Shown piece by piece: positions 23,290 through 46,163 of a DNA stretch of 64,000 nucleotides (position 1 is its first letter; the number at the start of each line of letters is the position of its first letter). The notes under the pieces are model-generated. The model made no database searches, had not been told where the DNA came from, and saw only the letters and a list, made by a program, of their open reading frames with translations. The stretch covers positions 248,001 through 312,000 of the IMG/VR virus record IMGVR_UViG_3300024239_000013. One strand, given 5' to 3'. Made by a program: the position numbers and the translations under genes.

Positions 23290-24438
23290 TTAATCTATTA
23301 ATTTTGATTTAGCTTTTTTAATTCTTCCTACGTTAGCTGGAGAATTCTTATCTTTTTCTATACTAGCAAAAAGATCAGATACCACCTTTTTAGTTCCTGA
23401 ATTAGCATCATCTCCGTTAATAATCTCCTGATTTATTTTATTTGTTAACTTAGTAAAATCAGATTCTTTGGATAAAACCTTAGTTATCTCTGATTCAGTT
23501 TTACCTAGACCTCTAAATAGATGTAAGAGATTTTCCTTTGCATCTAAAGTAGAGCTCAGTTCAAGAAGATCCATTTTAAAAGTCTCTATGTACTTTAGTG
23601 ATATTGTTTTAGGGCTCTTAGCCATTTTAGATTCTAAAACATTCAATTTTCTCTCAATATCAGATCTTAAATCTGCTATTTCTTTTTCTAATTCATTTTT
23701 TCTTTGTATTAGGTCCTTACCCTTTCTACTCGAGATTTTTTTCTTCTCCTTTTCTAAATCTACAGATAGATCATTTTTAGGGGCTCTGTCCTCTAAATCT
23801 CTCTCAGTTTTAGCTTTTATATCATTAGCCTTTTCCTCTGCATCTCTCTTTGCATCTTCTATTTTTTCTTTATACTTTCTAATTTCAGTTTGGTCTTTAG
23901 ATCTTTCTGAAGCTAATTTATATTCTAGTTCTGCTATAGCAATTTCATCCTCTGCATATCCTGCAGCTAAATATTGTTTTCTTCTAGAATTATCATCAGT
24001 AAGTCTATAAGCAACATCTTTTGATTTTTTAATCTTTAATTTTTGAGCTTTCACATAAGCTTCAAATTCTTTAATTTTAGAATCTCTTTCTTTCTCTAAA
24101 GAATCTATTTTTTCTTTATTTCCGGATCTAGATAAGCTATCTATTTGAATATCTATTTTTTCTATATTCTTTTCAAACTCGTCTTTTTTTTCTATTAAAT
24201 CTAATTCTAAATCAAGAATAATTTTTCTAGCCTGATCAATCATACTTATTCTTGACATAGATCCAAGGAAAAATTTAGATAAGCTATTCTTTAAATTATT
24301 CATAAGATTCCCTTCATTAACCGAATGTATAGGTTCAACTCTTTCTAGGGAATTAAGCTCATTCAACAATTCAGGACTTACACTTTCCATCAAATCCCCA
24401 TATTTTTTGAATTCACTAAAAGATGGTATATTTTTCAT
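23290..24438 (-). CDS. putative internal head protein, coiled-coil
   Basis: MKNIPSFSEF..LMES..VNEG leader; late motif at 24465. Confidence 0.5.
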   Translation of the reverse strand: MKNIPSFSEFKKYGDLMESVSPELLNELNSLERVEPIHSVNEGNLMNNLKNSLSKFFLGSMSRISMIDQARKIILDLELDLIEKKDEFEKNIEKIDIQIDSLSRSGNKEKIDSLEKERDSKIKEFEAYVKAQKLKIKKSKDVAYRLTDDNSRRKQYLAAGYAEDEIAIAELEYKLASERSKDQTEIRKYKEKIEDAKRDAEEKANDIKAKTERDLEDRAPKNDLSVDLEKEKKKISSRKGKDLIQRKNELEKEIADLRSDIERKLNVLESKMAKSPKTISLKYIETFKMDLLELSSTLDAKENLLHLFRGLGKTESEITKVLSKESDFTKLTNKINQEIINGDDANSGTKKVVSDLFASIEKDKNSPANVGRIKKAKSKLID

Positions 24439-24502: not shown

Positions 24503-26239
24503 CTAATGAATTCCATATTTATAATTACCACAGTCCCATATTTTATAATATCCCATAGAATGCATAATATCATCAGCTTTTAAGTTTGGATCAAATCCAA
24601 GAGAAATCAATTTAGATTTTGTCCAGTTTAGTCGATTAGATTTTCTATCGTCAACAACCCAATAATATCCAGGAGTTGTTTTTCCGATATAAATAAATCC
24701 ACTTTTATAATAAGAAGTTTCTTTGTGATTGGGGGAGAAAGAAACATCGCAATAAGTAACTATAGATTTGGTAATATTATCTTTTATATACTTAATAATC
24801 CTAGAAACTCCACCAACTACAGTTGTATTAATAAGACTACAACTTCTGATTACCTCATATTCATATTTAGATTTTTTACTATCTATTAATTTTCTAGTTT
24901 TCGCTAAACTCATCAGAGAAACTAATACATTCTCGTAATATAATCCTATTATTATACTTGCTGGACAATATCCCTTGAGATGATTCTTCTGTGTAAAATG
25001 CTTATATTCACTTTTAGTGACCTGTTTTATTTCACACTTTCTGGCAAAAATTTTTCTTGAAATAGCACCAACTGCAGAAGATATCATAGACTTAACTATT
25101 TCTTTTTTATACCTCCAATCATCCTCCCATATATGATATAAACTAATACCTTTACTTGATAAAAATTCAGTTTTTTCTTGGTGATATTTAGAATTCTTAT
25201 ATATCTCAGAGTGCCAATAAAGTCCATTAAACTCAAAAGCAACGTTTATTTTTGGCAAATAGACGTCAACTTCAGAAAATTGTTTATTGTTTTTAAATAA
25301 ACTTCTATTATTAGATAATACCTCTCCAGGATATATTTCTTCTATATATTTTAGTAATTCCCTTTCCAAAACAGAAGATTTCATGTCTATTGGGTTACAA
25401 TATGGACATGGATCTATTCCATTTCTAAGTTTAGCATTTATAGTTGTTGAATGGAAACTAAAATCATGATTGCATCTTTCACAATTTAGATCAACCTTAG
25501 TTGTCGAATAACTAATCAATCCAATAGAATAAGAATCCAATTTACTAGAAAGTGTTTTTTGCTTAGTTATCGATGAAGACTCCGAAACTTTCTTAGCTAT
25601 TTCAGGATTTTTCATAGTATTCTCGTGTCCATACTTAAGAATATTGGTATTTCTTGACGACTCCGAATTAATAAAATCCAAGGTTCCATATTTTTCAATA
25701 CAGGTTTTAAGTCTTTTTTCAGAAATCTCCTTATTTTTTAAGGGAGAGTCTACACCATATTTTTCATTAAGGGTTTCCCTTATTTTTTCTTTTACTTCAT
25801 TGGATTTGAAATTATGATCAACCCCATATTTTGTTAACATAGTAGCTTCATATTTTTTTCTTTCTTCCGAACCTTTTTTGAAATACGAGTCTCCGTATTT
25901 TGACTTTATTGTATTTTTAAAACTATCGACTTTAATTTTTCTTTTACATTCAGAATTACCACATGTATTAAAGTAACCATCACTGAATCTATAGAATTTT
26001 TTAGGGTTTCCGCATATGCACTTTTCTACTAATTCCAAATTATTTATTATATGATATAATCTTTGTCCTATAGTAATGTCAAAATATACTTGATTTAGAA
26101 AATGTGTTACGTTCTCGATATCTGAAATTAATTCCTTATCGTTCCTTATTCTAGTGAATATGCCATTTAATGACATATTATTCGAAAGCTTATCGTTGAT
26201 GTCATTCGTTATTAATATCAGATTATTGCTAAGTTTCAT
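24503..26239 (-). mobile_element. free-standing homing endonuclease-like gene (KYG repeats, CxxC, PD-(D/E)xK/Vsr-like nuclease, GNAT/Mom-like C-terminus)
   Basis: EKYGV repeats, CERC/CPYC, EVDVYLP..AFEFNGLYWHS, HIWEDDW, ARKCEIK..YCD..IWDCG; sits downstream of the MCP terminator. Confidence 0.6.
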
Positions 26240-26329: not shown

Positions 26330-28042
26330 TTATGCTAGACCTCCTGCAGGTACATTAACAAAGAATGTTAAGTACATAGTTTCAGGTAACATACCAGCTT
26401 CAACTAGAGCGTATCTAGATTTAACTGCTATTTTAGGTGACATAGTACCTTCAGAGATTGTCTGAATTGACTCTGCCATCATATAAGGCATGAATTTAAG
26501 ACCTGGTTCGTCGTCTCCACCTTTTCTACCAACTAATACTCTAGTATCTCCGTAGCTCATGTTTTGATCTACATAAACAGTCATACCAGCAAGAGATCCT
26601 ACCGGATATAATGTACCGTTATTTTGAGTTAGAGTGTTAGAGAAAGGAGCAAAAGTGAATTGAGAGATGTCTTGAAGTGCACTTGCAACTGCAGCGTTTG
26701 TTACGATGAAGTTAGCTGGACCTCTTCTACCTCTGTTAGCTACTACGTTAGCAGCTGCAAGAATTCTAGAGAATAATCTTCTTTGTAAAGTTGATAAGTT
26801 CTCGTAAGAAGTTGATGCAGGACCTGCTGGAATAGCCATAGCTACACCTTGATCTGATTTATTAACGTAAGCTGCTGTTGTACCAGTAGATCCGTTAAGT
26901 ACTAAGTTTAAGTTCAAGTTTTGGTTTTCAACGTTGTTGAATTGAACGTGGTTAGACCAACCTAGAGCAAATGCTCTTGAAAGGATGTGCTTGTTAATTG
27001 CTTGAGAAACCTCGTTAACTAATGCATTCTCGATCATTGAAATAACGTCGATACCGAATTGTTTGTTAAGGTCTTGGATTTGCTCAGTTGTAACTGAAGC
27101 AGCAACTTGGAAAGTCTCAGCTTCTACGAACTTAGTGAAAGTAGAAAGACCCATTGAGTTATAGTAAGTAGATTCAGCTACTCCTCTTAACATTGGGTTA
27201 TAAGTTTTAGTACCATCAACATAAGGTCCTTGCCAATCAGCATCGTTATTGAAACCAGCACCAGAGAATCCTTGGATGTGATCTTCTAAAGCTTTAACTA
27301 ATTGAGCAACGTATCCGTTAACTGAAGTAGAAGTACCAGTGTACATACCGCTAGTACCAACTTGTACTGAAGTACCGTTGACGATAGAAGCTATTGTATA
27401 GTTTTGAGTAACTCCAGCAACCTCGAAAATTGGGAAACCGTCAATTCTTGAAAGTCCAACGAAAGTTAAAGTTAAAGTACCACCGTTAACTACAGTGTAA
27501 GAAGTTCCTACTGTAAAAGTACCAGCTGTAGCACCAGTAGCACCAGCAGCAGATCCTTGATAAACAGGGAATTTAATCATTGATGGAGCTTTTGCTAAAG
27601 CATCTGCAGCAGAAGCATCTGAGCCAGTAGCACCAGCTAATTTACCACCTGCATATACATAATCTAGATAAGATAAGATACCAGTTGGTCCTGACATAGG
27701 AATAACAGGAACGATATCAAACCCGATTGTTTTAGCAGCTACTTGAATAGCTAAAGGTAACAATGATGGGAATTTATCTCCTGAACCTTGCCAAGATGCG
27801 TTATAGAAACCAGCATTAGCACCAGTTGATAATCCACCTGCTCCTGGGAATGATGGAGGGGTTACGTTACCCATACCATTTACAACACCTAAAGAGTTAT
27901 ATGCACCCGCAGATTCGTTTAATGAGTGATAGTGACAATATTTAGTTAACCACTCTTTTTTGCTTGAGTCAGTGATTCCTGCTTTACTCTCGATGATAGG
28001 AGACCAGGTTTCATAGATTTCTTGTTCGTTAATCAATTTCAT
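26330..28042 (-). CDS. gp23: major capsid protein, T4 gp23-like
   Basis: DIVPVIPMSGPTG, TEQIQDL, EVSQAINK, RGPANFIV, FMPY, PKIAVKSRYAL; strong codon bias; SLNES processing site. Confidence 0.92.
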   Translation of the reverse strand: MKLINEQEIYETWSPIIESKAGITDSSKKEWLTKYCHYHSLNESAGAYNSLGVVNGMGNVTPPSFPGAGGLSTGANAGFYNASWQGSGDKFPSLLPLAIQVAAKTIGFDIVPVIPMSGPTGILSYLDYVYAGGKLAGATGSDASAADALAKAPSMIKFPVYQGSAAGATGATAGTFTVGTSYTVVNGGTLTLTFVGLSRIDGFPIFEVAGVTQNYTIASIVNGTSVQVGTSGMYTGTSTSVNGYVAQLVKALEDHIQGFSGAGFNNDADWQGPYVDGTKTYNPMLRGVAESTYYNSMGLSTFTKFVEAETFQVAASVTTEQIQDLNKQFGIDVISMIENALVNEVSQAINKHILSRAFALGWSNHVQFNNVENQNLNLNLVLNGSTGTTAAYVNKSDQGVAMAIPAGPASTSYENLSTLQRRLFSRILAAANVVANRGRRGPANFIVTNAAVASALQDISQFTFAPFSNTLTQNNGTLYPVGSLAGMTVYVDQNMSYGDTRVLVGRKGGDDEPGLKFMPYMMAESIQTISEGTMSPKIAVKSRYALVEAGMLPETMYLTFFVNVPAGGLA

Positions 28043-28071: not shown

Positions 28072-30060
28072 TTACCTTTTTGAGAATTTTTGCTCTAGTG
28101 CTGAAGCTATATAATTCATATAATCATTTGAATAAGCTTTTGGAGCATCGTCTTGAGCTAGATTTTCATTCTCGTTTAGTTTTTGAACACCAACTGGTTT
28201 AGTCCCTAGCTGTCTAGTAGACCAGAAGTTTTTGATCTGGTAAGGTGTATCTAATCTATAGAAGTTACTTTGAGCAATGATAGATTGCTGGTGGCCTTCG
28301 TTAAGAGATTCCCAAACCTGAACATATTCTTCAGGCATCTCGTCGATAAACTTAAGTCCTGTTTTGTTAGTGTTCTCGTTAAGAGTTTCTTCTGCCTTCT
28401 GTGTGTCGGCTGGTGCTTCTACAAATCTAGAAGCTTCGTTTATATTTGATTCAGTTTTTTGTGTTTTAACTGATTCTATCAAATTGTCAATTTTTGTTGA
28501 AAGATTATCATAATCTCCAGCAAATCCAGATTCATTTAAACCTGCTTTAGCTGAAAGATCTACGCTTTCTCTTAGTGATTCTTCTTTTTGCATAATTCCG
28601 TTATTAACGCTTTCTGCTATATATTCAGTATAAGATATTGATCTTTTAACTTTTTCTGCTAAATATTCAGAATAATCCAATCCTCTATTAAGATTTTCAG
28701 CTAAATAATCAGAATATTCGATTGATTTGTTTAAGTTTTCTGCTAAGTACTCAGTATATTCAATTCCATCATTTAGTTTTTCTGCTACGTATTCAGTGTA
28801 GGCAATACCTTTATCTAAGTTTTCTGCAATATATTCAGTGTAAGCAATACCTTTATCTACATTTTCTGCAAGATATTCAGCGTAGGCAATACCTTTATCT
28901 ACATTTTCTGCAAGATATTCAGAATATTGGATATTCTGATCAACTTTCTCTGCAAGATACTTAGAATATTCAATGGATTTATCTACATTTTCAGCAACAT
29001 ACTCAGAATAAGAAATGGATTTATCTACATTTTCAGCTAAATACTTAGAATAAGAAATATTCTTATCAAGATTTTCAGCTAAATATTTGCTGTAGCTGAT
29101 ACTAGAATCTAAATTCTCTGCAAGATATTCTCCGTACTTGATAGCATTATCTAAGTTTTCAGCAAGATATTCAGAATATTTTTCTAATTTTTTTACTCTT
29201 TCTTCTAGTGCTGAAGTATTAGAAGATTCATCAGATTCTGTCAATTTTTCTCTTTGGTCTTTAATTTCTGCTATTGAACTTTTCATAGCATCCATCTCTT
29301 TTTTTAAGAAAATCGAATATCGATTAAGTTCTTCTGCAGTAACAAGTTCTTTATTCTCCATGAGGATTGTTTTATTTTTGTCTATTTTTGATACGAGTTT
29401 GTTAAATTCTTCGTTATTTTCAACTTTATATATCTTTACTGAGGATTCATTTTCTAGGCCTAATGATTCATTCACACAAATTAAATCAGATAATACACTA
29501 GAATTTCTCATTTCGAAAAATTCTTCAAATGTATAACCTGCACTTTCATAAACTCTTTCAAGCTGTGCGTCTTGAAATCCAGGATCTGCAACTAGGTCGT
29601 AAGTAAATATCTTTTTAATTTGAACTTTCTTATCGTTACCTACCGCTCCTGCTGCTCTAGATGATATAGATAAAGGAACTCCAGCATCTACTAATTTCTT
29701 AGCAATCTGACCCGCTGGTGTATCTAGAAGTCTTACTTTAATTCTAATTTCTCTAGTATTCTTATCGTAAGTAAGATCCGTAATTATGTGGGATATGTTT
29801 TTTAAAGAAACGTCAAACTTTTCTGGGTGGTCTAATTCTCCAACCAGTCTTTTTTGAGCTATCTTATCTTTAAGATAATTTAAATGTGGAAGATATTCAG
29901 CTTCTTCATATATCCTATTGTTGTTGTTCTCTTTTCCGAAAACAGCAGCAATACCCTCAAGTACATATTCTTCAGAATCTGTTTTTTTAGATTCCAAAAC
30001 CGTTTCCTGTCTTTCTAGAATAAAAACTAAATCTTCGTTCAATTTTTGAGTTGTCGGCAT
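28072..30060 (-). CDS. gp21: prohead protease (gp21-like) fused to scaffold/core domain
   Basis: NNNNRIY, GELDHP, LLDTPAG, ISSRAAG, TYDLVADPGF, then 14 x 14-aa repeats. Confidence 0.88.
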   Translation of the reverse strand: MPTTQKLNEDLVFILERQETVLESKKTDSEEYVLEGIAAVFGKENNNNRIYEEAEYLPHLNYLKDKIAQKRLVGELDHPEKFDVSLKNISHIITDLTYDKNTREIRIKVRLLDTPAGQIAKKLVDAGVPLSISSRAAGAVGNDKKVQIKKIFTYDLVADPGFQDAQLERVYESAGYTFEEFFEMRNSSVLSDLICVNESLGLENESSVKIYKVENNEEFNKLVSKIDKNKTILMENKELVTAEELNRYSIFLKKEMDAMKSSIAEIKDQREKLTESDESSNTSALEERVKKLEKYSEYLAENLDNAIKYGEYLAENLDSSISYSKYLAENLDKNISYSKYLAENVDKSISYSEYVAENVDKSIEYSKYLAEKVDQNIQYSEYLAENVDKGIAYAEYLAENVDKGIAYTEYIAENLDKGIAYTEYVAEKLNDGIEYTEYLAENLNKSIEYSDYLAENLNRGLDYSEYLAEKVKRSISYTEYIAESVNNGIMQKEESLRESVDLSAKAGLNESGFAGDYDNLSTKIDNLIESVKTQKTESNINEASRFVEAPADTQKAEETLNENTNKTGLKFIDEMPEEYVQVWESLNEGHQQSIIAQSNFYRLDTPYQIKNFWSTRQLGTKPVGVQKLNENENLAQDDAPKAYSNDYMNYIASALEQKFSKR
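28610..29180 (-). repeat. 42-bp (14-aa) coding tandem repeat, 14 copies of Y-x-E-Y-L-A-E-N-L-D-K-x-I-x
   Basis: Counted directly in the translation. Confidence 0.92.
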
Positions 30061-30085: not shown

Positions 30086-30093
30086 TATATATC
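30086..30093 (-). promoter_or_regulatory. late promoter of protease-capsid operon
   Basis: GATATATA 25 nt upstream of ATG 30060. Confidence 0.75.
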
Positions 30094-30128: not shown

Positions 30129-32711
30129 TTATTCATATTTTATTCTATCTTCAACTTCAGTCGTAAACTTTTTAGCTATTTGGAAAGCTTCACCGTCGGT
30201 CACTCTATATTTTCTAACTCTATCCCCAGGGGATGCAAATTTATTTTTAAGTTTAACTTCTACTATATCTCCTCTGTTATCCTGTAGTGCTTTTGCGAAA
30301 GATATTGCCTTCCATCCTTCTACGCCTAGAACTTCTTTTTCCTTATCTGATAAGAACTTATCTATTAAGTTTATTCCACCAGTTACTGAATTGTCTCTTA
30401 TTATCGTAGAACTTCTTCTATCCTTAATTTTAACATCATTTGGATCAACCTTGATATAATAATCATCAGAAACCTTACCTTCTACTTTATCACCAGAAAC
30501 TTCTGGTTTTTTTTCATCGGTTTTTGGATTTACTACTGTTACGATATCAGATTCTCTTCCGTCTTTTTTATTATCAAGTTTGGCTTTTTTAAATTGATAT
30601 ACACCTCTCTTAGGATTGTTTATATCCTCATTTATGGTATTTGTCTGAACCGAAATCGATTCACCTCTTTTGGCTCCATAGTCACTTGGATCTATAGTAA
30701 AGTTAGTGAATTTTCCAGTTTTATATTTTCTTAATTCTGGATCTGCGTATTCTCTATCAGTAACCCAATATATTGCGACTTTTGCTGGTGTTGATAAATC
30801 GGCTGAAGATAGACTAACAATATCTCCTGATTTTTTATCCTCATTTATACCATAAATTCTATCGCTAAACGAAGAGAAGCTTGTAATGACATCATTTTCA
30901 TTAACAAGGTCCATGTATACTAAGCCACCGTCTTCTGATTCATTCTTTTTAGAACCATTTCCTGAATCTTCTTTAACTTCCTTAGGTATAAATATTTTAT
31001 CGATGTCATCTTTAGAAGTTGATCTTAATTCGTCATTATTCATAAGTCTACCAACAACATTTATTATATCACCTTCATCGTTCTGATAATAAAATTCATA
31101 ATTTTCTGGTGCACTATCATCTGAAATTATAAGTTGATCTGAAGAACTGTCCAAAGCTGTTTTAAAAACATCCCAATCACACATACCCTTAAATTTAAAG
31201 ATAGTTGCTAATTTAGATATTCCGTCAACATAAGATATTTTAAAATCAAGGTCTTCGTTATCGAAAACTCTAGCTATAGTATTTAGAGCACCTTCTTGGT
31301 CATTAACAATGTCGTTATTGTCCAATGCAATTAAAACAAGATCATGTTCTGCAAGTTGTTTCTGTGCTTCTTTAGAATTTATCTGAGTTAATATAAGTAT
31401 GGAGTAATTGTTCTTATCCGCTATTTTAATAAATTCTGCTGTTGTTCTCGTTTCATTGTTAAAAAGGAAACTAGTAACAGTGCCCCATCCTCCTCCTGCT
31501 GGCTGAGACCAACAAACTGTAATAGGTACTCCGATTGGGATTTTTTTAGAATCCATTTCCCTCTGTGCAAATGATTTAACCTCATTATATTTTGGAGCTT
31601 GCTTATCACTAAACCAATTCCAAGCTGATCCTATTACGTCAGTTAAAATAAGTATTTCACCAACAAAAGGAATAAGTTTAGCTCCTCCTTGAGCTGCTCC
31701 TCTTGTAAATCCTTTAGAAAATGCTTTTAAAGCACCCTTTGCTCCAACCTTACCTAATGTATAAGCTGATTTTGCTCCCTTTGCTCCTCTAACTATCGAA
31801 GATCCAATAGTTCTGGTGTTTTTAAGTAAAGCAACATCTTTAGCTCCTCCCCATAGACTTTTTATAGCAGAACCACCATAATTTTTTATCTTATCCATTA
31901 CACCAGGGGGAACCTGAGTTGCATTTTTTGGATTTATTCTAAATCCCGATATACTCTTAAGTAAAAGTGCTCCAGATAATGCTCCACCCGCAGCTTTTAA
32001 TGCTCCAAAAAGAGTGATACTAACCCCACCCATTACTGCTAATATTGATGCATCTTGTATAATTTTTTGAGTAAGACCTTCAGCAGTTTCATTTTCTGGA
32101 ATTTGACCACCGGGATACATCTCATTAACATCAAGAAGCATTATCTTTGATGCAGATTGAGATTTAGTGAAAGATTTCATTTTTACCGCCTTTAAGGTTT
32201 CCTGTATATCTTCTCCAGTATCTGGATCATTTCCACAGATAAAAATTGCCTTTTCCTTTCCATCTAATATTTCACCAGGACTTAAAGTTTCGTCTATTTT
32301 ACCTTCACTCTTTAATTTATTGTAAGCAAAATGGAATTTTATGGCTTCCCTAAATTTAGGATCATCATCAGCAGTATTAGTATCTTCATTCAATTTAGAA
32401 AAATTAGAAAAAGAAATTACTCCGTTATCTAAATCGTTCTCATCTAACGAAACGTTTATATCGTCTAAATTAAAATTATATTTTTCCTTGATGTATTCTG
32501 CAACATTAGAATATTTACTCATATCTTCAGAATCAGCGACCCAAGATCTAGGATTTTTATCAAGCCATTTTTGAAAATCCTCAGATTTTGCCCACCATTG
32601 AAAATCTTCAAAAGATGCACTTTCTGCTCCTTTCATATCAAGGGGAACTGTTAAGAATGGGAAATCGTCTCCGTTTTTATATTCTGTTTTTTTAGGTAGT
32701 AGTATAATCAT
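30129..32711 (-). CDS. large putative head/ejection protein with Gly/Ala-rich hydrophobic segments
   Basis: Internal ISFSNFSKLNED and ITSFSSF..INED motifs; ASILAVMGGVSITLFGAL and LIPFVGEILIL segments. Confidence 0.45.
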   Translation of the reverse strand: MIILLPKKTEYKNGDDFPFLTVPLDMKGAESASFEDFQWWAKSEDFQKWLDKNPRSWVADSEDMSKYSNVAEYIKEKYNFNLDDINVSLDENDLDNGVISFSNFSKLNEDTNTADDDPKFREAIKFHFAYNKLKSEGKIDETLSPGEILDGKEKAIFICGNDPDTGEDIQETLKAVKMKSFTKSQSASKIMLLDVNEMYPGGQIPENETAEGLTQKIIQDASILAVMGGVSITLFGALKAAGGALSGALLLKSISGFRINPKNATQVPPGVMDKIKNYGGSAIKSLWGGAKDVALLKNTRTIGSSIVRGAKGAKSAYTLGKVGAKGALKAFSKGFTRGAAQGGAKLIPFVGEILILTDVIGSAWNWFSDKQAPKYNEVKSFAQREMDSKKIPIGVPITVCWSQPAGGGWGTVTSFLFNNETRTTAEFIKIADKNNYSILILTQINSKEAQKQLAEHDLVLIALDNNDIVNDQEGALNTIARVFDNEDLDFKISYVDGISKLATIFKFKGMCDWDVFKTALDSSSDQLIISDDSAPENYEFYYQNDEGDIINVVGRLMNNDELRSTSKDDIDKIFIPKEVKEDSGNGSKKNESEDGGLVYMDLVNENDVITSFSSFSDRIYGINEDKKSGDIVSLSSADLSTPAKVAIYWVTDREYADPELRKYKTGKFTNFTIDPSDYGAKRGESISVQTNTINEDINNPKRGVYQFKKAKLDNKKDGRESDIVTVVNPKTDEKKPEVSGDKVEGKVSDDYYIKVDPNDVKIKDRRSSTIIRDNSVTGGINLIDKFLSDKEKEVLGVEGWKAISFAKALQDNRGDIVEVKLKNKFASPGDRVRKYRVTDGEAFQIAKKFTTEVEDRIKYE

Positions 32712-32713
32712 TT

Positions 32714-33514
32714 CTATTTTTCTGTGTAAATTTTATCGTATGATTTTGAAATAATATTTATCAATTTTTCTATATATCCTTCATTTCTAAGCTTTTTAAA
32801 TGCTAGGTTTCCTATAGACATTTCTCCTCCTTTTTCTAACCCCTCTCTTCTCATTTTAAATATTTTTTTCTTCATCGTAAGACATCTCTTATAAAGTTGT
32901 CTAGCATTTGAAGGTATCATCGAGTCAACAAGAAGTCTTGAATGTAATTGTTCTATGTCAGAAACTATGGAATTATATTTCTTTTCAACATCTCTCTCGT
33001 CTATTGAAGGTGGATTATATGATGGAGATTTTATCCATTCATTTTTTAAAAGAGAAAAGAGAGCAGATGCTGTATGTGGTTCTGATTCGTCCTGTACGTA
33101 AAGTTCAACGTCATAACCTCTAATAACGATATCATGTCTAAGATTCCACATGAATCTAATCCCACCTATGGCTTTTTTTAGTATTTGAGGATTGTCATCA
33201 TCAATACCTTTAAGGTTAACTATAATATGAACGTCAAGATCAGAAAAATCTGTGTAGTTGTAATTTGATAAAGATCCAGTTAATTGTATATCAACAATAT
33301 CCTTTTGTTTTAATACATCTTCATAATTAGAAAAAAATTCATTGGCTATCCTAAGTAGCTTTCTTCTAACTCTCTGGTCAAATACCCATTTATCCTTCTT
33401 CTTAGTCCAAAAAACTGGAGCCAACTCATCATGGTAGAAAGAATTTACCTTTCCTTCATTTAATGAATTGCTTCTTTTATTTAAAAATCTATTAAACTCT
33501 AATAATCTATCCAC
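32714..33514 (-). CDS. Pol-beta superfamily nucleotidyltransferase with CTS-like leader
   Basis: TGSLSNYNYTDFSDLDVHI (GS..DxD) and VELYVQD; GTG start; MDRLLEFNRF..LNEG. Confidence 0.75.
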   Translation of the reverse strand: MDRLLEFNRFLNKRSNSLNEGKVNSFYHDELAPVFWTKKKDKWVFDQRVRRKLLRIANEFFSNYEDVLKQKDIVDIQLTGSLSNYNYTDFSDLDVHIIVNLKGIDDDNPQILKKAIGGIRFMWNLRHDIVIRGYDVELYVQDESEPHTASALFSLLKNEWIKSPSYNPPSIDERDVEKKYNSIVSDIEQLHSRLLVDSMIPSNARQLYKRCLTMKKKIFKMRREGLEKGGEMSIGNLAFKKLRNEGYIEKLINIISKSYDKIYTEK

Positions 33515-33519: not shown

Positions 33520-33553
33520 AAAAGCTTTTCTCTATATATCGAGAAAAGCTTTT
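33520..33553 (-). terminator. terminator hairpin whose loop is the late promoter motif
   Basis: AAAAGCTTTTCTC-GATATATA-GAGAAAAGCTTTT then T-run on minus strand. Confidence 0.8.
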
Positions 33554-35271: not shown

Positions 35272-35751
35272 TTATCCACCAGTAGTTTCCAAGCCAAGTT
35301 CGTTTGAGCTATATACAGTATCTGAATTGTAAGCAGATCCTGGTATTTCGTTATTTTTATATTTTGAAAGGGTTTCCATGTTACCGTGATCCCCACCTTC
35401 TGCAAATTTAACGGTGTCACTTTTAACCTCAATAACGCTTTCTGTTTTTTTACCGTCAGTATAAACTTGTATAAAATATCTATATTGCTGATTATCAGGA
35501 TTTCTAAAAGCTCTAACTATTACACCAATAACCTTCTTCTTTGAATTCAATGGCTGAGCAGTGATAACATCACCCAATTGAAATTGTGAACCCTTAACAG
35601 TTCTATCCACATTAGGATCTGGGCCAACGGAAACCGAAAGATCACTGAATGGCTTATAATTTATTTTAAATACACCATTGGCTCCGCCATATCCATAGCT
35701 GTCTCCAAATGCATTGCTATCAAATTCATTTATTGAGATTATGTGTTTCAT
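35272..35751 (-). CDS. hypothetical protein with CTS-like leader
   Basis: MKHIISINEF. Confidence 0.5.
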   Translation of the reverse strand: MKHIISINEFDSNAFGDSYGYGGANGVFKINYKPFSDLSVSVGPDPNVDRTVKGSQFQLGDVITAQPLNSKKKVIGVIVRAFRNPDNQQYRYFIQVYTDGKKTESVIEVKSDTVKFAEGGDHGNMETLSKYKNNEIPGSAYNSDTVYSSNELGLETTGG

Positions 35752-35752: not shown

Positions 35753-36301
35753 TTAATTAATGTCGGGATTTTCCGAGTTATTTTGAAGCTTTATAACTTC
35801 TTTTATCTTAGAAGCTAATTCATATTGTTCATTGTCAATAGCCTTTTTGAACATAATCTCGAGTTTATTCTCATCGGAATCCTCAAATTTATTATTCTTA
35901 TATTGAGAATTTTCTATAGTTAGGACCCTTTGTGGAGAGTAGATGACTTCTAGTGTAGAATCTAGTACAATCTCTTCGAATTCCGCTTCTTCATCATCAT
36001 ATTGTTCCATCAGCTGGTTTAATGATTCTTCGGTCCATTCTGCATTGTTCCAGAAAATCATCCAATACCCATAAATTAATTCGGAAAGATCATTTTCTAT
36101 GACGTATTTTAATAGGCATTTTAGCTCATTTTTTATATCTGATTTGGTTATACCGGTATCAAAAGATTTTCTCTTAATTCCAGGTATAGCAGAGGTTCCG
36201 TCTCCGACACCTTTTTTAAAGCAAGTATTTACCGCATAAATAGAATCCCAGTCTAGACTAGAAATTACTTTTTCGATTAATTTATTGTTGGGCTTTTTCA
36301 T
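35753..36301 (-). CDS. hypothetical protein with C-terminal UVR (UvrB/C) motif
   Basis: LEIMFKKAIDNEQYELASKIKEVI. Confidence 0.6.
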   Translation of the reverse strand: MKKPNNKLIEKVISSLDWDSIYAVNTCFKKGVGDGTSAIPGIKRKSFDTGITKSDIKNELKCLLKYVIENDLSELIYGYWMIFWNNAEWTEESLNQLMEQYDDEEAEFEEIVLDSTLEVIYSPQRVLTIENSQYKNNKFEDSDENKLEIMFKKAIDNEQYELASKIKEVIKLQNNSENPDIN

Positions 36302-36317
36302 TTTTTTATATATCCTT

Positions 36318-36731
36318 TTATCTTCCTATTTGCTCTGCTATATCGGATATCCATTTCTGGTATCTTTCTGGATAGAAACTTTTTAACTGTAAAAGATCTT
36401 TTTTTGTAATTTTGTATTTTTCCCTTATTAAATCTTCAATATCAGGTAATTCTTTTACTGAATCTATCTTCTCCTTTTCTAATTTTTTAGTTTTTGTATA
36501 TATCCAAGTTGGAGGTTTGCTGTATCTGTGAGATAGATTGTCTCTCCACCAATCTACTACCGGAGGGGAGACAACCTTTAATTTATTGAATTGATTAGCC
36601 TGTATGGGAAATTGTATCGACATGATTCGATTGACCATAAAAAAATTCTTAGACTTATCAAATTTACCTACAGTTTTCCAAACTTTATCGTCACTTGAAA
36701 ATATATTTTTTATTAAAGTAAATAATTCCAT
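36318..36731 (-). CDS. clamp loader small subunit gp62-like (tentative)
   Basis: FFMVNRIMS resembles gp62 motif; same operon as gp44. Confidence 0.4.
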   Translation of the reverse strand: MELFTLIKNIFSSDDKVWKTVGKFDKSKNFFMVNRIMSIQFPIQANQFNKLKVVSPPVVDWWRDNLSHRYSKPPTWIYTKTKKLEKEKIDSVKELPDIEDLIREKYKITKKDLLQLKSFYPERYQKWISDIAEQIGR

Positions 36732-36736
36732 TGTTA

Positions 36737-37885
36737 TTAATTTAGAAAATTTTCAAAAGGATCAAATCCTTTAGGTTGGTATCCACTAGTTACCCATTCG
36801 GTTCCTTCTAATATTTTTATTCTATCTAGAGTTACTGATCTTTTTTCAATATTAGATCCTCTCTCAATCTCACTTAAACAACCTTTAGCTACAAAATCTG
36901 GTATCATACTTCGATCCAACCACATCAATTTAAAGTTCCTAATTATATTAGATTTAACTTTTACCCTGTTTTCTGTACTATCTACGCCTTTAGAAGTTCG
37001 AATTACAATACCACTAAGCCAATCCAGGAAATTCTCGCTATCTTCGGAATTTAACAAATAGCTAAAACTCTTATCAGACCATTCTGATTCTAGGAATGCA
37101 CCGTAAACAGCTTCTGCTTTTTTTTGTGTGAAATTGACAATCTTATTGTTATTGGTATAAGACCATACACTAGGTACAGAATCTCCTTTATCCCCGATTA
37201 AAATTTTATTAAATATGAAAGGTCTACTTTCAATTTCCTCTATCTGAACTTTCTTAAGAAAATCTTTAAACCTTTCCTTTTCTGGGGAAATTGCAGAAGC
37301 CATATTAAAAATATCAATAGACTCGTTTTTATCCAGCCAATCCTCTTTCCATCCTTTAGGAACCGAAATCACATTTTTCTTAGAGTTATTGTTCCATATC
37401 GTAGTCCACGATTTATTAGAAATTTTTGCTAATTGGTGCAAATCCTTATCACCAGTTATGATTATGCAATTTTCTCCTGCTTCGTTAAAGTGATCTGACC
37501 AGTACATAAGTAAATCGTCACCCTCTGCACCTTCGGTTTTAGAAAAAATGAATCCCATTTTTTCTAATTGGGCACCAAAAGATTGCATGAGATCAAAAAA
37601 TATAGTCCAGTCTACTGCTTCATCTTTTACTCTTCCTGATTTATACCCCCCGTCCTCTATTTCAATATCCTTCCTCCAGCTTCTACTATCAGAAGTAAAA
37701 ATTAATCTTCCCCCTTGTGGGATCATTTTCAGGGAGGAGCAAAGATCGGTAGAAACTTTTCGGATAAATGCAGCTTGTTCAGATTTATCTTTTAAGATTT
37801 TACCAGGATCTACATTTCCATACCCACCAAATATTCCAAAGGTTTTATGAAATATATAATTCCCGTCTATTAATATATTAACCAT
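36737..37885 (-). CDS. rnh: 5'-3' exonuclease / T4 RNase H-like
   Basis: LIDGN, DSRSWRK, EGDD, TGDKDLHQL, GDKGDSVP. Confidence 0.85.
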   Translation of the reverse strand: MVNILIDGNYIFHKTFGIFGGYGNVDPGKILKDKSEQAAFIRKVSTDLCSSLKMIPQGGRLIFTSDSRSWRKDIEIEDGGYKSGRVKDEAVDWTIFFDLMQSFGAQLEKMGFIFSKTEGAEGDDLLMYWSDHFNEAGENCIIITGDKDLHQLAKISNKSWTTIWNNNSKKNVISVPKGWKEDWLDKNESIDIFNMASAISPEKERFKDFLKKVQIEEIESRPFIFNKILIGDKGDSVPSVWSYTNNNKIVNFTQKKAEAVYGAFLESEWSDKSFSYLLNSEDSENFLDWLSGIVIRTSKGVDSTENRVKVKSNIIRNFKLMWLDRSMIPDFVAKGCLSEIERGSNIEKRSVTLDRIKILEGTEWVTSGYQPKGFDPFENFLN

Positions 37886-39389: not shown

Positions 39390-40721
39390 TTAAAATTTAT
39401 TAGAAAAGTCATCTGAAGTTGTCTTGTCGGATCTTATCTCTATAAATCTTGGTAAAAATAAAGATCTGTTTCCGTGTTTATCCTCTATAGTTACGTTATA
39501 TTGGACAGCAGCAATTTTTCCAATATGAGAATCTGGATCTTCACTTAGTGTTTTTAAATCATTGTCAGTAAATCCGGCTCCGACTTTAACATTAAGAGTC
39601 CCACTTGAATCTGTTAAGATAAATCCACCAATAAATCCTTCTCTCTTTCCCTCTCCTGGATACCATCCAGTTATAAGAAGATCGCAATCATTAACCTCTT
39701 TAAATTTTATCCAAGACTTAGATCTTTTACATTCATAAACAACATCAGCTTTACAAATAACTCCCTCCCCACCTTCATCGACAATCTTTTTATAAATAGA
39801 CGAAACTTCACTGGCATCTTTAAGCTCCCACATTTTAGCTAATTTAACCGGGGATTCTTCTGAAATCGAGGATAAAACTTTTTCTAACGTATCTCTTCTT
39901 ATTTTGTAATTAATAACTCCAGAGCCAGTATCTAGAGTAGATGCTTCCTCCAGATCAAAAATATTAAAAAGAAGTCCCTTTTCTATAGATGAATCAACTT
40001 TACCCTTAAGTATCTGAGTAACCTTGCCACTGACTGATTTTCTATTCAAATCCGTTAATTCGCCATCGAAAAACCAATCACCCTTCAATCCGCTATTTAT
40101 CATACACGTTTTAAGATCGAAAGTTATTTTAGGAAAACAAGAGGAATCAAGTTCATTAAATGCTCTAGTAAAGTAGGAAAATTCACCATTCTTATAAAGT
40201 GCTATTACTCTCACTCCATCATATTTCTCCTCACAATATACTTTTCCCCATTTTTCTATGTTATCGTGATCATCTGTTGCCAGCATAAGAGAAGGATCGG
40301 GGATTAATTCTCTCTTAAGTGCTTTATTGATAAGTTTTGCACCTATACCTATGTTCATTCTTTTGGTTAATATTTTCATAAGTACAGTTCTGAGTTCCAA
40401 ATCCTCAGCATCATCTTCAGATATTCTCTGTGAGATGATATTTTGAGCTCTACCTCTAAGTATATCGTTTGCTGCAGGGGCTTTTTTAAGCTCTTCTACA
40501 AGGGCTTTAAATTCATCCCAATGATTAGGATTACTTTCACTTAAAGATTCGTTAAAAGATATCTTATGAAGTTTTGTGGTAATAAATGGGTTATAACAGA
40601 CGTCTAGAATATAAGAGAATTTGTCTGTTAAGTTTTCTTCGATTAATTTTTGTTTTGCCTTTTGAGATCCCTCTCCTGTAAGATTTTCTAGATTTTTAAA
40701 AATTCTTAATTCTTGTATCAT
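39390..40721 (-). CDS. ATP-dependent DNA ligase
   Basis: EKYDGVR, FDGEL, EGVICK, KRSKSWIKFK, SLFLPRF. Confidence 0.92.
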   Translation of the reverse strand: MIQELRIFKNLENLTGEGSQKAKQKLIEENLTDKFSYILDVCYNPFITTKLHKISFNESLSESNPNHWDEFKALVEELKKAPAANDILRGRAQNIISQRISEDDAEDLELRTVLMKILTKRMNIGIGAKLINKALKRELIPDPSLMLATDDHDNIEKWGKVYCEEKYDGVRVIALYKNGEFSYFTRAFNELDSSCFPKITFDLKTCMINSGLKGDWFFDGELTDLNRKSVSGKVTQILKGKVDSSIEKGLLFNIFDLEEASTLDTGSGVINYKIRRDTLEKVLSSISEESPVKLAKMWELKDASEVSSIYKKIVDEGGEGVICKADVVYECKRSKSWIKFKEVNDCDLLITGWYPGEGKREGFIGGFILTDSSGTLNVKVGAGFTDNDLKTLSEDPDSHIGKIAAVQYNVTIEDKHGNRSLFLPRFIEIRSDKTTSDDFSNKF

Positions 40722-40738
40722 ATTGATTTATTTTTTCA

Positions 40739-40746
40739 CAAATATA
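40739..40746 (-). promoter_or_regulatory. Bacteroidota-type -7 element TATATTTG (ligase)
   Basis: Matches TAnnTTTG; 17 nt before ATG. Confidence 0.55.
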
Positions 40747-40770
40747 ATACAAAAATTCGAACTGAAAAAA

Positions 40771-41742
40771 TTATAAATTGAAATATTTACTATTATAGAC
40801 ATCTTCTATCCCGACCGAAACCGCACCTACACTAGAGCATGCGATAGATCCAGCTATATTACATAATTTTAAAGATTCTTTTATATCCAACCCAGAAGAA
40901 AAACATAAAGATATCATAGCGGTAACGGTATCACCAGCACCCGAAACGTCGGAAATTTTCACAGGATATGAAGGAGAGTGATATGATTCATTAGCAGTGA
41001 TGAAAATTACCCCATTTTCTGATAAGGTGACTAGTATAGATTCTATACCTAATTTAGATATAATATTCCTTCCCTCATAAACTATGGAATCGAAATCATT
41101 GGGACTCAATTTTTTATTGATTAAACTACAAAACTCTAAGAAATTGGGTTTAATCAAAGTACAACCGCTATATGAATCAAAATTTTTTAATTTAGGGTCT
41201 ACTAATACTGGCTTATTTTTTTCCTTGCAAATTTTTATAATTCCCTTTATAAGTACAGAGGTTAATAATCCTTTATTATAGTCCTCCATAATAACACAAT
41301 CATAAAAATCTATAACGGATTCTATTTTTGATAATATAATAGATTCTAAATTACTATCAATATCAATTATATCCTCATTATCAACTCTTAATAATTGATG
41401 AGAATTTGAAATGTATCTTGATTTAGTAGTTGTCTTTATTCCCGACCTTTTTATAAGAAGGCTGAGATCAGATTTTTCTGAAACCAAACTTTCTACCTTA
41501 TCTCCATTAAGATCATTTCCTATAACAGAAATAATATCGCTATATCCACCTAAAGAATGAATGTTTAGAAAAACATTACCTGCCCCTCCTAAATAGTAAT
41601 TTTCAGATTTATTTAATAATACCGGTACTGGAGCTTCTGGGGATATTCTAGATACGATTCCATTTACATAATGGTCTAGCATGATATCTCCAATGACCAA
41701 TATTTTAAGTCTGGAAAAAATATCCCTGATGTCTAGATTCAT
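40771..41742 (-). CDS. rfaE: heptose-7-phosphate kinase (RfaE/HldE kinase domain, PfkB family)
   Basis: GDIMLDHY..RISPEAPVPV, GGAGNV, DYNKG, VDPK, DVSGAGDT. Confidence 0.85.
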   Translation of the reverse strand: MNLDIRDIFSRLKILVIGDIMLDHYVNGIVSRISPEAPVPVLLNKSENYYLGGAGNVFLNIHSLGGYSDIISVIGNDLNGDKVESLVSEKSDLSLLIKRSGIKTTTKSRYISNSHQLLRVDNEDIIDIDSNLESIILSKIESVIDFYDCVIMEDYNKGLLTSVLIKGIIKICKEKNKPVLVDPKLKNFDSYSGCTLIKPNFLEFCSLINKKLSPNDFDSIVYEGRNIISKLGIESILVTLSENGVIFITANESYHSPSYPVKISDVSGAGDTVTAMISLCFSSGLDIKESLKLCNIAGSIACSSVGAVSVGIEDVYNSKYFNL

Positions 41743-41774
41743 TTGAGATTGAGTTTTTTAGAGATTATTTATTA

Positions 41775-43442
41775 TTATAGTGTCACTTCCGGAGTTTCTT
41801 CATCTGTTCCCCCTTCTGCTGGTGTTGTTCCCTCGGTCGGTGAAACTTCTTCACCAGTAGCGGATTCTGCTCCAGCTTCTCCTGATTCTGCTTCATTTTT
41901 TTTAGCAGCTTTAGCTTCCTTTTCTTTATAGATTTTATTCATTTTTATTTCGTCTGGATTCATTCCAAGAAATCTCTGGATTAAGAAATCATTATCGAAA
42001 TAAGATTTTTCCTCTTCTCCGACTTTAACTTTAAGTTCAGCTAATCCCTTAATAAATTCACTTCTTTTTGTAAATGACGTCATCTGTACAGATTCCTCAA
42101 ATTCATTATCTCTATAAAAATTTAAACCAAGATTTGATTTAAAGCTTTTATCTTTAGATAATTCAGGATGATCTAAGCACATCTGAATATAAAGAGGTTT
42201 TACTAGGATCTCCTGGAATATCGATCTAAGTCTTCTAAGGAATTTTTCAAATCTTATTTCGTCTCTTTCTAGCTGATCTATAGCTATTTGATAATTGGCA
42301 GGTGTTCCATTTTTAGAGGCAAATCTAGCATAAGGTATTTTAGAATCCATTTTAAGTTTATTGAAGAAAAATAAAACACTCTCCATCACATTAAAATCTG
42401 GTCCAGATGGGTTTAACGATTCTATCTGTGGGGACTGCCCATCTTTCTCGGGAAACAGATAATTCTTATAGAACTGAACTTTAGGTCTACCGTTAATCGT
42501 CAATTCTCCAGAAGCATCATTGATAGAAATATCCTCTTTATAGTTAGACATCAGTTGTCCCAATGTTTGCATAGCTTTTTGTGAAGATTGACTTCCTATA
42601 GGTATAATAAATTTAAGTCTATATGAAGCATTCATAACATTCCATATAACTCTGGAGTTTTCCATTATTCTTAGAATATTATAAGATCTCACCAATCTTT
42701 CTACGTAACTTACTCTTGAAATACTATTTCCCTTTGCATAAGAAATATAGATAACCTGTTCGTTAGTGAGTTTTCGGGTCATCTGTGGATTTTTTGGATA
42801 TTGTAGCCAAAATTGAACATATTCGCTTTCTCCAACCTTTTCAACTACAGGTTGCAAAGAAGCAGGATCTAATTCTTTAAATCCTATAATCTCTTTCCCC
42901 TTGTTATCATAAATTATTTCAAAAGCTAAAAACCCATCTATGAGAAACTGTCTAAAATACTGCCACCCCAAAACACTATTCTGAAATCCAAAAACATTAT
43001 ATATTCTATTATAATGTTTGAACATTTTTTCCTTCATTTTTTCCTTCAGATCCATGTTGATAAATGAGGGTTGTGCAAAATAATTTCTATCGTCGTAATT
43101 TATTGCCTCGTCACTAATAGTATCCAATATAAATTCTATCTCACCATTCAAAGAAAACTTTCTGAGATAATTTCTCTTATCGTTATAGTCTCTATCGAAA
43201 TATGCAATATATTTTCTTACCTTTGTATCCTGGTAAGAAGCTGTCCAATAAAAAGCATCATTTTGGGTAAATCCTGTTCCCTCTTGACTGGAGAAGAATC
43301 CCTCAGTTTTCCCAATGGCCTGTGAATTTCTCACAACCATATCGTCATACTGCATACCAAATTTTGATATATTCCCTAGATTTTTTAATATATTACCTAG
43401 TGCGGATTGGTTTGGTTTTAAATAATCTAAAAATCCTGCCAT
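41775..43442 (-). CDS. gp20: portal protein gp20-like, copy 2
   Basis: FRQFLIDG, SYVERL, KIPYARF, RDEIRFEKFLRRLRSIF. Confidence 0.85.
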   Translation of the reverse strand: MAGFLDYLKPNQSALGNILKNLGNISKFGMQYDDMVVRNSQAIGKTEGFFSSQEGTGFTQNDAFYWTASYQDTKVRKYIAYFDRDYNDKRNYLRKFSLNGEIEFILDTISDEAINYDDRNYFAQPSFINMDLKEKMKEKMFKHYNRIYNVFGFQNSVLGWQYFRQFLIDGFLAFEIIYDNKGKEIIGFKELDPASLQPVVEKVGESEYVQFWLQYPKNPQMTRKLTNEQVIYISYAKGNSISRVSYVERLVRSYNILRIMENSRVIWNVMNASYRLKFIIPIGSQSSQKAMQTLGQLMSNYKEDISINDASGELTINGRPKVQFYKNYLFPEKDGQSPQIESLNPSGPDFNVMESVLFFFNKLKMDSKIPYARFASKNGTPANYQIAIDQLERDEIRFEKFLRRLRSIFQEILVKPLYIQMCLDHPELSKDKSFKSNLGLNFYRDNEFEESVQMTSFTKRSEFIKGLAELKVKVGEEEKSYFDNDFLIQRFLGMNPDEIKMNKIYKEKEAKAAKKNEAESGEAGAESATGEEVSPTEGTTPAEGGTDEETPEVTL

Positions 43443-43446
43443 TTTA

Positions 43447-45036: not shown

Positions 45037-45069
45037 TTAAATAATACTTTATTAATTTTATCGAATTTC

Positions 45070-45672
45070 TTAAATTAATTTCGATCTATATTCATTATAT
45101 ATCCCCTGTATGGATAACCCCTCTATCATATTAAAACTAAGATAAGGAATTTTTGGCCAATCCTCCATGGAAATAACCTTAACATTTTTTATGAATTTAT
45201 ATTTAAATCCAAAATAGGAATTTAAATATCCAGTACCTTTAAGAATATTCTTTAGCACAGGGTCCTTTAAATTCACTGGAACTTTGGTCGATCCTCTTTC
45301 GTATGAATTCTTATTAGCTAATAATTGTTCATAGAAATTATCATATATTCTTTCTATTATATCAACTCTTATTATATTCGGTACAGTTATTAAATCTATA
45401 CCTTTTATTACAGTTCCAGATTCTAATGTGTTGAAAACATCGGTACAAATAACAAGAGGCATTCGATCTACGAAAGGCCTTTTTTTGCTAATTTCAGAAT
45501 CCGTTAAATACCTAAAAGAGTAAATCTCTCCTGGGATGAATGGAGGAATGAAAGATATATCTGGTGAATCGTTCTTAAAATATTTACTTAAGAACAGATC
45601 ATTAGTTGAAGTGAATATGTTTCCCGAACTAGTTTCATCTTCTTTGTATTTAAGAACTAAATCTTTATACAT
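45070..45672 (-). CDS. DNA end protector gp2-like (tentative)
   Basis: PGEIYSFRY..DRMPLV pattern; adjacent to gp4. Confidence 0.5.
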   Translation of the reverse strand: MYKDLVLKYKEDETSSGNIFTSTNDLFLSKYFKNDSPDISFIPPFIPGEIYSFRYLTDSEISKKRPFVDRMPLVICTDVFNTLESGTVIKGIDLITVPNIIRVDIIERIYDNFYEQLLANKNSYERGSTKVPVNLKDPVLKNILKGTGYLNSYFGFKYKFIKNVKVISMEDWPKIPYLSFNMIEGLSIQGIYNEYRSKLI

Positions 45673-46157: not shown

Positions 46158-46163
46158 ATGGTA

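Follow-up and report, generated by a model that had tools for sequence, protein, structure and literature searches.

Why does a large phage carry a gene for a nucleotidyltransferase (NTase) of the DNA polymerase beta (Pol-beta) type next to the genes of its head, and would the enzyme act in the cell that makes it or travel in the capsid to the next one? We considered this question for an open reading frame (ORF) at positions 32714-33514, minus strand, of a 64,000-nucleotide stretch of DNA (hereafter the window) that corresponds to coordinates 248001-312000 of the virus record IMGVR_UViG_3300024239_000013 in IMG/VR. The record is a single sequence of 319,334 bp with 31% GC and with its genes almost all on one strand; coordinates are those of the window unless given as record coordinates, and genome-wide counts refer to the 422 ORFs of the record. 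An earlier note on this DNA had proposed that the NTase is made late, tagged for packaging and injected, by analogy with the Alt enzyme of phage T4. The best-supported reading in our analysis is that the NTase carries a signal for entry into the capsid; the argument proceeds by analogy and from a homologue seen in virions, and we hold this reading to be only somewhat more probable than its negation.

The ORF boundaries given in the earlier note are exact. The gene encodes 266 amino acids, starts with GTG (33512-33514, minus strand) and ends with TAG; the GTG start is shared by all eight related genomes compared, and no Shine-Dalgarno sequence was found at this start. The stop codon lies 2 nt before the ATG of an ORF of 860 amino acids (TAG-AA-ATG). 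The core of the NTase, residues 21-266 (32717-33454, minus strand), comprises a predicted Pol-beta palm at residues ~30-165 and a C-terminal helical bundle at residues ~170-266. The catalytic motif, G80-S81 followed after 10 residues by D92-L-D94-V-H96, is encoded at 33233-33277 (G80-S81 at 33272-33277, D92-L-D94 at 33233-33241), and the third active-site carboxylate, E137 (33104-33106), falls in a modelled strand at residues 134-142; all of these lie on the minus strand. The pattern that defines the superfamily, hG[GS], 10-13 residues and [DE]h[DE]h, is thus present as T-G80-S81...D92-L-D94-V, with the third carboxylate on a later beta-strand. None of 20 close homologues departs from G80, S81, D92, D94, H96 or E137, and the Pol-beta motifs of the GS/DxD/E type can be regarded as intact, as the earlier note had claimed. 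Among 50 diverse homologues, G80 is invariant, S81, D92, D94 and H96 are at least 90% conserved, and position 137 is mostly E, with D or Q in a few.

The NTase belongs to phrog_36119, a viral family of unknown function (E 9.6e-40; residues 12-261 aligned to positions 5-243 of a profile of 247). Its match to Pfam NTP_transf_2 (PF01909) reaches 16.9 bits (E 0.0085), below the gathering threshold of 21 bits, which the family members P0207, P0226, P0201, P0237 and P0222 pass. A word search recovered 1401 relatives. With an exhaustive profile search the number rose to 4300 clusters (50% identity), and 1767 of these have E-values of 1e-30 or lower; viral sequences make up 94-100% of the Atlas clusters closest to the NTase. 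In some family members the NTase module is fused to an M23 peptidase (P0181, P0198), a GNAT domain (P0237) or an adenylate kinase (P0164), in proteins of 740-930 amino acids which resemble, by analogy, the injected ‘polyvalent’ proteins of phages. Searches of 150 representatives using phmmer with the RimK, CHAP, SLT and leucine-rich repeat (LRR)-like proteins of the phage gave no further fusions, and the adenylate kinase fusion was the only one of its kind.

An AlphaFold (AF2) model built from a 50-sequence alignment has a mean predicted local distance difference test score (pLDDT) of 88.4 and a pTM of 0.75, and shows the palm followed by the C-terminal helical bundle; residues 1-6 and 12-22 have pLDDT below 50, while from residue ~30 onward nearly every block of ten residues exceeds 80 and most exceed 90. 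The best Foldseek matches are the aminoglycoside nucleotidyltransferases (ANT) ANT(9), ANT(6) and ANT(3'')(9), then LinB and ANT(4'), followed by the CD-NTases CdnC, CdnE, CdnD and CdnG and by TENT5, with KNTase also present. The first 17 matches listed are all two-domain NTases, and nearly all of those listed have the NTase fold. The matches are marginal (best E 4.9e-4, TM-scores 0.2-0.3). VIA-align searches with the first model, both the wide and the second-look version, were dominated by the generic C-terminal helical bundle and did not inform the palm. Profile searches of the PDB gave borderline matches only, the best being the AMPylation palm of Legionella DrrA (E 0.0038) and the next a minimal archaeal NTase. 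Because the motifs are intact, the palm fold is modelled and the remote matches are all weak, the NTase is, as far as sequence can tell, probably a divergent, active enzyme with no close characterised relative.

One may postulate from these neighbours that the substrate is a small molecule, the enzyme being either an ANT-like modifier of antibiotics or a CD-NTase-like synthase or decoy of second messengers that counters host defence signalling. The order of the Foldseek matches favours this scenario, as does the deposited annotation of one cyanophage homologue as an aminoglycoside NTase, and a connection with the nucleotide pool is suggested by the one fusion to an adenylate kinase. The aminoglycoside enzymes are indeed the best structural neighbours, but at TM-scores of 0.2-0.25 only and with no Pfam ANT match, the E-values throughout are marginal, and no sequence model of ANT or CD-NTase families matches. 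Aminoglycoside resistance would also be of no evident use to a phage, and no genes for Cap effectors or receptors lie nearby. We consider a small-molecule substrate improbable. Of the structural comparisons proposed in the earlier note, then, the NTase fold itself was recovered and CD-NTases were matched weakly (E 0.012-0.03). A CBASS arrangement was not found, since the neighbours (an exonuclease, the 860-aa protein and a protease) include no Cap effector or regulator, and neither was an MNT-HEPN layout: the NTase is a two-domain protein of 266 amino acids, and no HEPN domain was found in its neighbours. The CCA-adding family gave no match at E 0.1 or better.

A second scenario, which concerns the substrate and holds whether or not the protein is packaged, is that the enzyme acts on RNA 3' ends rather than as a protein NMPylase (an enzyme that transfers a nucleoside monophosphate, NMP), in tailing or repairing tRNA or mRNA or in blocking tRNA in the manner of MenT or AbiEii. 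Weak matches to Pfam MTPAP-like_central, a poly(A)-polymerase palm, recur across the family; TENT5/FAM46 is among the Foldseek matches; the C-terminal helices carry many conserved lysines and arginines (K215, K217, K220, R222, K240 and R243); and RNA-repair NTases are common in jumbo phages (PMC7824862). However, no match to RlaP or to a CCA-adding family reaches E 0.1, the neighbourhood offers neither an RNA ligase nor a kinase-phosphatase as a partner (the ligase encoded there is an ATP-dependent DNA ligase), and the best sequence match to a solved structure, weak as all of these are, is to the protein-AMPylating palm of DrrA. We regard an RNA substrate as unlikely, if less so than a small molecule.

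The N-terminus bears more directly on where the enzyme would act. Residues 1-20 (33455-33514, minus strand) form a leader that resembles a capsid-targeting sequence (CTS), with an amphipathic segment (MDRLLEFNRF...) and then a linker; the N-terminus reads MDRLLEFNRFLNKRSNSLNE. In T4, a CTS of ~10 amino acids directs proteins into the scaffold core (PMC9958956). The T4 genes ipII and ipIII begin MKTYQEFIAE and ipI begins MKTFKEF (read from NC_000866), and the NTase homologue P0075 begins MLYRYNEFISE. Close homologues of the NTase keep M-x-x-[VIL]-x-x-[FY]-x-x-[FY], together with [LIV]-x-E before the core, while the rest of the N-terminus varies. The CTS-like leader recognised in the earlier note proved to represent a genome-wide family with the consensus M-x-x-[IL]-x-x-[FY]-x-x-[FY]-[ILV]-N-E. 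A regular expression for the leader matches 22 of the 422 ORFs, against ~0.5 expected from residue frequencies, and the scores from a position-anchored matrix are bimodal: 27 ORFs reach at least 15 bits, the highest of the remainder scores 5.2, and all 1292 internal-methionine windows stay below 8. A relaxed leader core is found in 12% of N-termini compared with 2.3% of internal windows. In all, ~27-51 of the 422 ORFs carry the leader, roughly 10%. Judged from these sequences, the CTS-like leader is not due to chance: it is common to many ORFs of the genome rather than private to the NTase. It is conserved as amino-acid classes (I/L/V and F/Y/W) and not at the level of codons, and a short amphipathic leader shared in this way is what CTS-directed cargo would be expected to carry.

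Across the NTase family the leader behaves as a module. Many members have it and others (P0144, P0240) do not, and in multidomain members with a C-terminal NTase (P0181, P0198, P0143, P0160) it stands at the N-terminus of the whole protein. Five members on other contigs (P0167, P0168, P0171, P0172 and P0174) have a different leader of the double-glycine type (ELSDEELEQVVGGS), which recalls the cleavable leaders of bacteriocins and Nif11-type proteins.

The other proteins of this phage that carry the leader include a CHAP peptidase (record 26833-27630), two SLT transglycosylases (record 51328-52131 and 82818-83567), an adenylate kinase (record 185832-186452), a RimK-type ATP-grasp enzyme (record 171110-172570) and a DUF5661 protein (record 36161-36991); in the window, the leader is also found on the ORFs at 16873-17493, 35272-35751, 23290-24438, 15228-15677 and 14251-15207. 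A further group is a tandem array of ~10 paralogues of 231-315 amino acids with weak LRR-like matches (record 39510-48374), encoded on the plus strand, which is the minority strand. The ORFs of the array all start MKRI[IVS]NYKTF[IV]NES, and each is preceded by a sequence like TATAATATAAAG or TAGTATAAAT. With its CHAP, SLT, LRR-like and other members, the set looks like one of ejection proteins or effectors. The adenylate kinase of the set, taken together with the single NTase fusion to such an enzyme, hints weakly at a functional link between the two activities.

Behind the leader lies a predicted site for the prohead protease, L18-N19-E20 (33455-33463, minus strand), which conforms to [I/L]-x-E with cleavage after the glutamate and would leave G21 as the mature start; in T4, gp21 cleaves after Glu in I/LxE (PMC12991175). 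E20 is nearly invariant in close homologues, with L, I or V two residues before it, and the site falls in a segment modelled with pLDDT below 50. The LNE site that the earlier note had pointed out is therefore conserved, but it is not the canonical glutamate of the leader: that residue, at position 13, is Lys in the NTase, and LNE at residues 18-20 is a second site behind a short insertion. In the ORFs of the genome, [ILV]NE is 4.7-fold enriched at residues 7-25, whereas [ILV]N[DQK] is not enriched. A candidate protease is encoded close by at 28072-30060 (minus strand), as a gp21-like Peptidase_S77 domain (E 1.3e-7, above the cut-off; phrog_207, E 8e-39) fused to a repeat-rich scaffold. Of the 35 [ILV]xE sites in this protein, 14 belong to LAE-type repeats arranged in tandem. 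The repeats, 14 in tandem and 14 residues long, are of the type Y-[ST]-E-Y-L-A-E-N-[LV]-D, and each is a potential protease site. The pentapeptide SLNEG is common to the scaffold and the NTase, and the capsid protein has HSLNESA near residue 43.

Late expression is the other property that packaged cargo would need to share with the head. Upstream of the GTG start we found an intrinsic terminator hairpin (33520-33553, minus strand) with a 13-bp stem, an 8-nt loop, a minimum free energy of -16.9 kcal/mol and a T-run that abuts the GTG. Its loop is formed by GATATATA (33533-33540, minus strand), a promoter-like element of a late class, 18 nt before the GTG. The genome has 55 copies of GATATATA, of which 41 lie within 60 nt upstream of the start of a same-strand ORF, mostly at 16-31 nt, and no specific 7-mer is more enriched than ATATATA in the windows from -50 to -9 (45 copies against 3.7 expected). 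The element precedes the prohead protease/scaffold gene (at 30086-30093), the tail sheath gene and other large ORFs, and its occurrence is correlated with that of the leader on the ORF behind it (odds ratio 7.2, p 9e-9). The T4 late motif TATAAATA is absent upstream of the NTase and shows no genomic enrichment, with 98 copies where 119 would be expected. The late promoter assigned to this gene in the earlier note is thus retained as an element common to the protease and tail sheath genes, but it is not the T4 motif and it sits in a terminator loop. A scan for sigma-70-type promoters gave no enrichment (48 sites against 55.9 expected), and this candidate was rejected. A gp55-like late sigma factor is encoded at 46164-46652 (minus strand; phrog_234, E 2.8e-14; 32% identity to gp153 of cyanophage S-CREM2, E 8.5e-10), adjoining the gene for a head-closure protein (45672-46157), and is likely to be the factor that reads GATATATA. 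The element shared by the NTase, protease and tail sheath genes and the presence of such a sigma factor are consistent with late expression of the NTase.

This arrangement is conserved. In 8 of 8 related genomes the NTase gene starts with GTG and has GATATATA upstream, and in 7 of the 8 (the comparison includes sites in L028 and L040-L044) a hairpin with a T-run behind it holds the element in its loop; in all eight, the GTG comes directly after the T-run. The stem sequences differ around the hairpin that is kept, which amounts to covariation. GATATATA also lies 21-30 nt upstream of the protease gene in all eight. We infer that the hairpin closes the upstream block of repair and replication genes; with a promoter inside the terminator loop, early and late transcription could be kept apart within very little sequence. 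A run search found no sequencing run recorded as RNA that contains the stretch, and the wastewater libraries labelled ‘RNA-Seq’ may be DNA.

The neighbourhood of the gene tells a similar story. The head genes to which the earlier note had referred are the S77 protease/scaffold gene and that of the major capsid protein (26330-28042, minus strand), whose family is named Gp23 in relatives. The order exonuclease, NTase, a protein of 815-953 amino acids, S77 protease/scaffold and Gp23-type capsid protein is kept in 7 of 7 relatives examined, whose NTases are 55-79% identical to that of the phage. The 860-aa protein (30129-32711, minus strand), which is translationally coupled to the NTase, has no family match; because its counterparts always lie between the NTase and the protease gene, it may be another protein of the head interior or one that is ejected. 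Residues ~215-350 form a hydrophobic stretch rich in Gly and Ala, and the protein has several [ILV]NE sites.

Homologues in T4-like cyanophages provide the only view of a family member in virions. The S-CREM2 homologue is gp156 (126012-126725 of that genome), which was detected as ORF156 in CsCl-purified virions by 6 unique peptides at 15.2% coverage (PMC10665884, Table 3). Its gene comes just after the late sigma gene and adjoins that of gp154, a virion-detected cytidylyltransferase that begins MKNFSSFLTEA and has a terminator and TATAAATA upstream. The virion-associated S-adenosylmethionine (SAM) hydrolase, kinase (ORF14) and cytidylyltransferase of S-CREM2, and its ORFs 13, 15 and 136, have CTS-like leaders; by regular expression, 4 of 5 ORFs with CTS-like leaders are virion proteins (Fisher p 0.013). 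In cyanophage S-CRM01, the neighbours of the homologue (g127, g129, the kinase g130 and g131) have the same kind of leader. The leaders of S-CRM01 g127-g131 and of S-CREM2 ORFs 6, 13, 14, 15, 136 and 154 are of the T4-CTS type, MK-x-F-x-x-F-L-x-E; the available sections of the S-CREM2 paper (PMC10665884) do not link its virion enzymes to CTS-like leaders.

Several observations weigh against capsid targeting of the NTase. The proposal rests on analogy and on the proteomic detection of a homologue, and the authors of the S-CREM2 study caution that abundant soluble proteins may co-purify with virions (PMC10665884). The leader of gp156 is itself short and non-canonical (MKKLISE...), the leader of our NTase has lost its canonical glutamate to Lys, and its structural matches to known NTases are weak. 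The homologues in the T4-like phages S-CRM01, Cr30 and DSL-LC03 lie among replication genes; T4 internal-protein genes are likewise scattered among non-structural genes. Lastly, an adenylate kinase and a RimK-like ligase are unexpected as capsid cargo, and the leader could have another purpose.

The alternative to which these points lead is a late enzyme of the cytoplasm that is never packaged and acts in the producing cell, its leader serving for recruitment to the assembly site or to a chaperone, as a stability or regulatory tag that the protease removes, or as a feature of translation initiation. The leader on an adenylate kinase of housekeeping type and on the ATP-grasp protein would then be less surprising, the placement of the T4-like phage homologues in clusters for replication and nucleotide metabolism would fit, and gp156 could be a co-purified protein of the kind its discoverers warn of. 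Other evidence is harder to reconcile with a cytoplasmic role: the leader is similar to the T4 CTS, which was defined by experiment, goes together with the promoter class that serves head and tail genes, is disordered and stands ahead of protease-type sites, and it is conserved in its amino acids, not its codons. The leader-bearing CHAP and SLT enzymes and the M23-NTase fusions look like ejection proteins, and in S-CREM2 CTS-like leaders track virion presence. We therefore regard a purely cytoplasmic enzyme as unlikely, although it is the alternative that we take most seriously.

If the NTase is indeed capsid cargo, a possible course of events would be the following. Transcripts of the upstream repair and replication genes would terminate at the hairpin, while late transcripts would start inside its 3' arm, would therefore lack the terminator, and would not terminate; hairpin and GATATATA together would restrict the NTase and the coupled 860-aa gene to late expression. 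The leader would bind the scaffold core and load the NTase into the prohead, where the prohead protease would cut after E20, and the resulting enzyme of 246 amino acids would stay in the head. Ejected with the DNA into the next host, it might modify a host protein or RNA with NMP, AMP derived from ATP being the likeliest, ahead of phage gene expression, and the leader-bearing adenylate kinase may be co-packaged and work with it. A broader proposal is that the leader defines, in a jumbo phage of Bacteroidota, an ‘injectome’ of ~40-50 proteins, among them the NTase, the adenylate kinase, the RimK-type ligase, peptidoglycan hydrolases and the 10-copy LRR-like family, and that the NTase represents a new class of injected effector that nucleotidylates a host protein or RNA within the first seconds, before phage expression. 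This proposal must be treated as tentative, and we rather doubt that it holds in full.

The remaining features of the genome provide context for this locus. Relatives of the capsid protein occur in Lak phages and in jumbo phages of Flavobacterium, Tenacibaculum and Chryseobacterium, and so its sequence points to a host among the Bacteroidota. A megablast search of the 10-kb neighbourhood of the NTase against phage records gave no match. We also considered whether the phage belongs with the bS21 phages that Chen et al. described, and this was ruled out because the genome has no bS21. Upstream of the NTase lie genes for a 3'-5' exonuclease, UvdE, a FEN-type 5'-3' exonuclease, guanylate kinase, a clamp loader and a DNA ligase, as well as two neighbouring portal paralogues (41775-43442 and 43447-45036, minus strand; phrog_213, Portal_T4), both of which are likewise present in the relative L028. 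Directly downstream of the capsid gene is an ORF of 578 amino acids (24503-26239, minus strand) that matches homing/HNH endonucleases in PHROGs (E 6e-103); in L026 a DUF7487 protein of 497 amino acids takes its place, and in L028 the place is empty, which suggests a mobile insertion.

Proteins injected by phages act before the genome is expressed and decide whether an infection survives host defences. To our knowledge few are known, among them IPI and Alt of T4, the virion RNA polymerase of N4 and the ejection proteins of phiKZ-type phages. If the leader described here is equivalent in function to the T4 CTS, the whole injected set of a large group of uncultured Bacteroidota phages could be predicted by a simple rule at the sequence level, which would point to new enzyme activities, a Pol-beta NTase being one of them. 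The NTase family has thousands of viral members, one of which has already been detected in virions, though not recognised there for what it is; were the injectome proposal true, the CTS mechanism of T4 would extend far beyond the T4 group and to new chemistry. CTS-directed, protease-processed head cargo is already known; what is new here is the class of cargo, a Pol-beta NTase, and the unusually large predicted set to which it belongs.

Comparison with known systems places the predicted cargo closest to the internal proteins of T4. Like IPII and IPIII, the NTase has a short N-terminal amphipathic leader followed by an I/LxE site for, as predicted here, an S77 protease, and the two phages further share a gp22-like scaffold core; the putative late promoter of this phage would likewise be of the -10-only type and read by a gp55-type sigma factor, and its cargo would likewise be dispensable for assembly. 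The analogy with Alt drawn in the earlier note holds in that the packaged cargo would be an enzyme; for targeting, IPII and IPIII are the closer models. There are also differences: the leader of this phage is ~3 residues longer than the T4 CTS and its consensus ends in F-[ILV]-N-E, another residue replaces the first leader Glu of the NTase, whose site is found at residue 20, GATATATA stands in place of TATAAATA as the promoter element, the leader is found on ~10% of ORFs rather than on a handful of proteins, and the cargo is a Pol-beta NTase instead of an ADP-ribosyltransferase. PhiKZ- and SPN3US-type phages have long propeptides with S/A/G-x-E sites. In the giant phages phiKZ and SPN3US, the prohead protease processes a large number of proteins inside the head, enzymes and families of paralogues among them, and these proteins are ejected (PMC5512222); the fusions of family NTases with M23 peptidase or GNAT domains are comparable to the injected ‘polyvalent’ proteins of phages.

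Among NTases, the relatives with a known setting are gp156 of S-CREM2 and g125 of S-CRM01, cluster C T4-like cyanophages in which they are annotated as hypothetical; they belong to the same family, with ~32-35% identity over ~90% of the length. Unlike the NTase studied here, gp156 is encoded after the late sigma gene among replication genes and not beside head genes, and in the available part of PMC10665884 it is not recognised as an NTase. ANT(9), ANT(6), AadA, ANT(4') and LinB share the N-terminal Pol-beta palm with GS...DxD and the C-terminal helical bundle (Foldseek E 4.9e-4 to 0.04), whereas the phage NTase belongs to a viral-only family and has an additional, conserved N-terminal element, YHDxLNPxFW, and a histidine after DxD, with the TM-scores of 0.2-0.25 and no sequence-family match. 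The AMPylation domain of Legionella DrrA/SidM, which is GlnE-like, matches over the alpha-helix, GS and DxD, although the match is borderline and spans ~70 residues. DrrA travels by way of bacterial type IV secretion rather than in a phage capsid; it is nevertheless an NTase that enters its target cell as an effector, and in this respect is comparable to the delivery proposed here for the phage enzyme.

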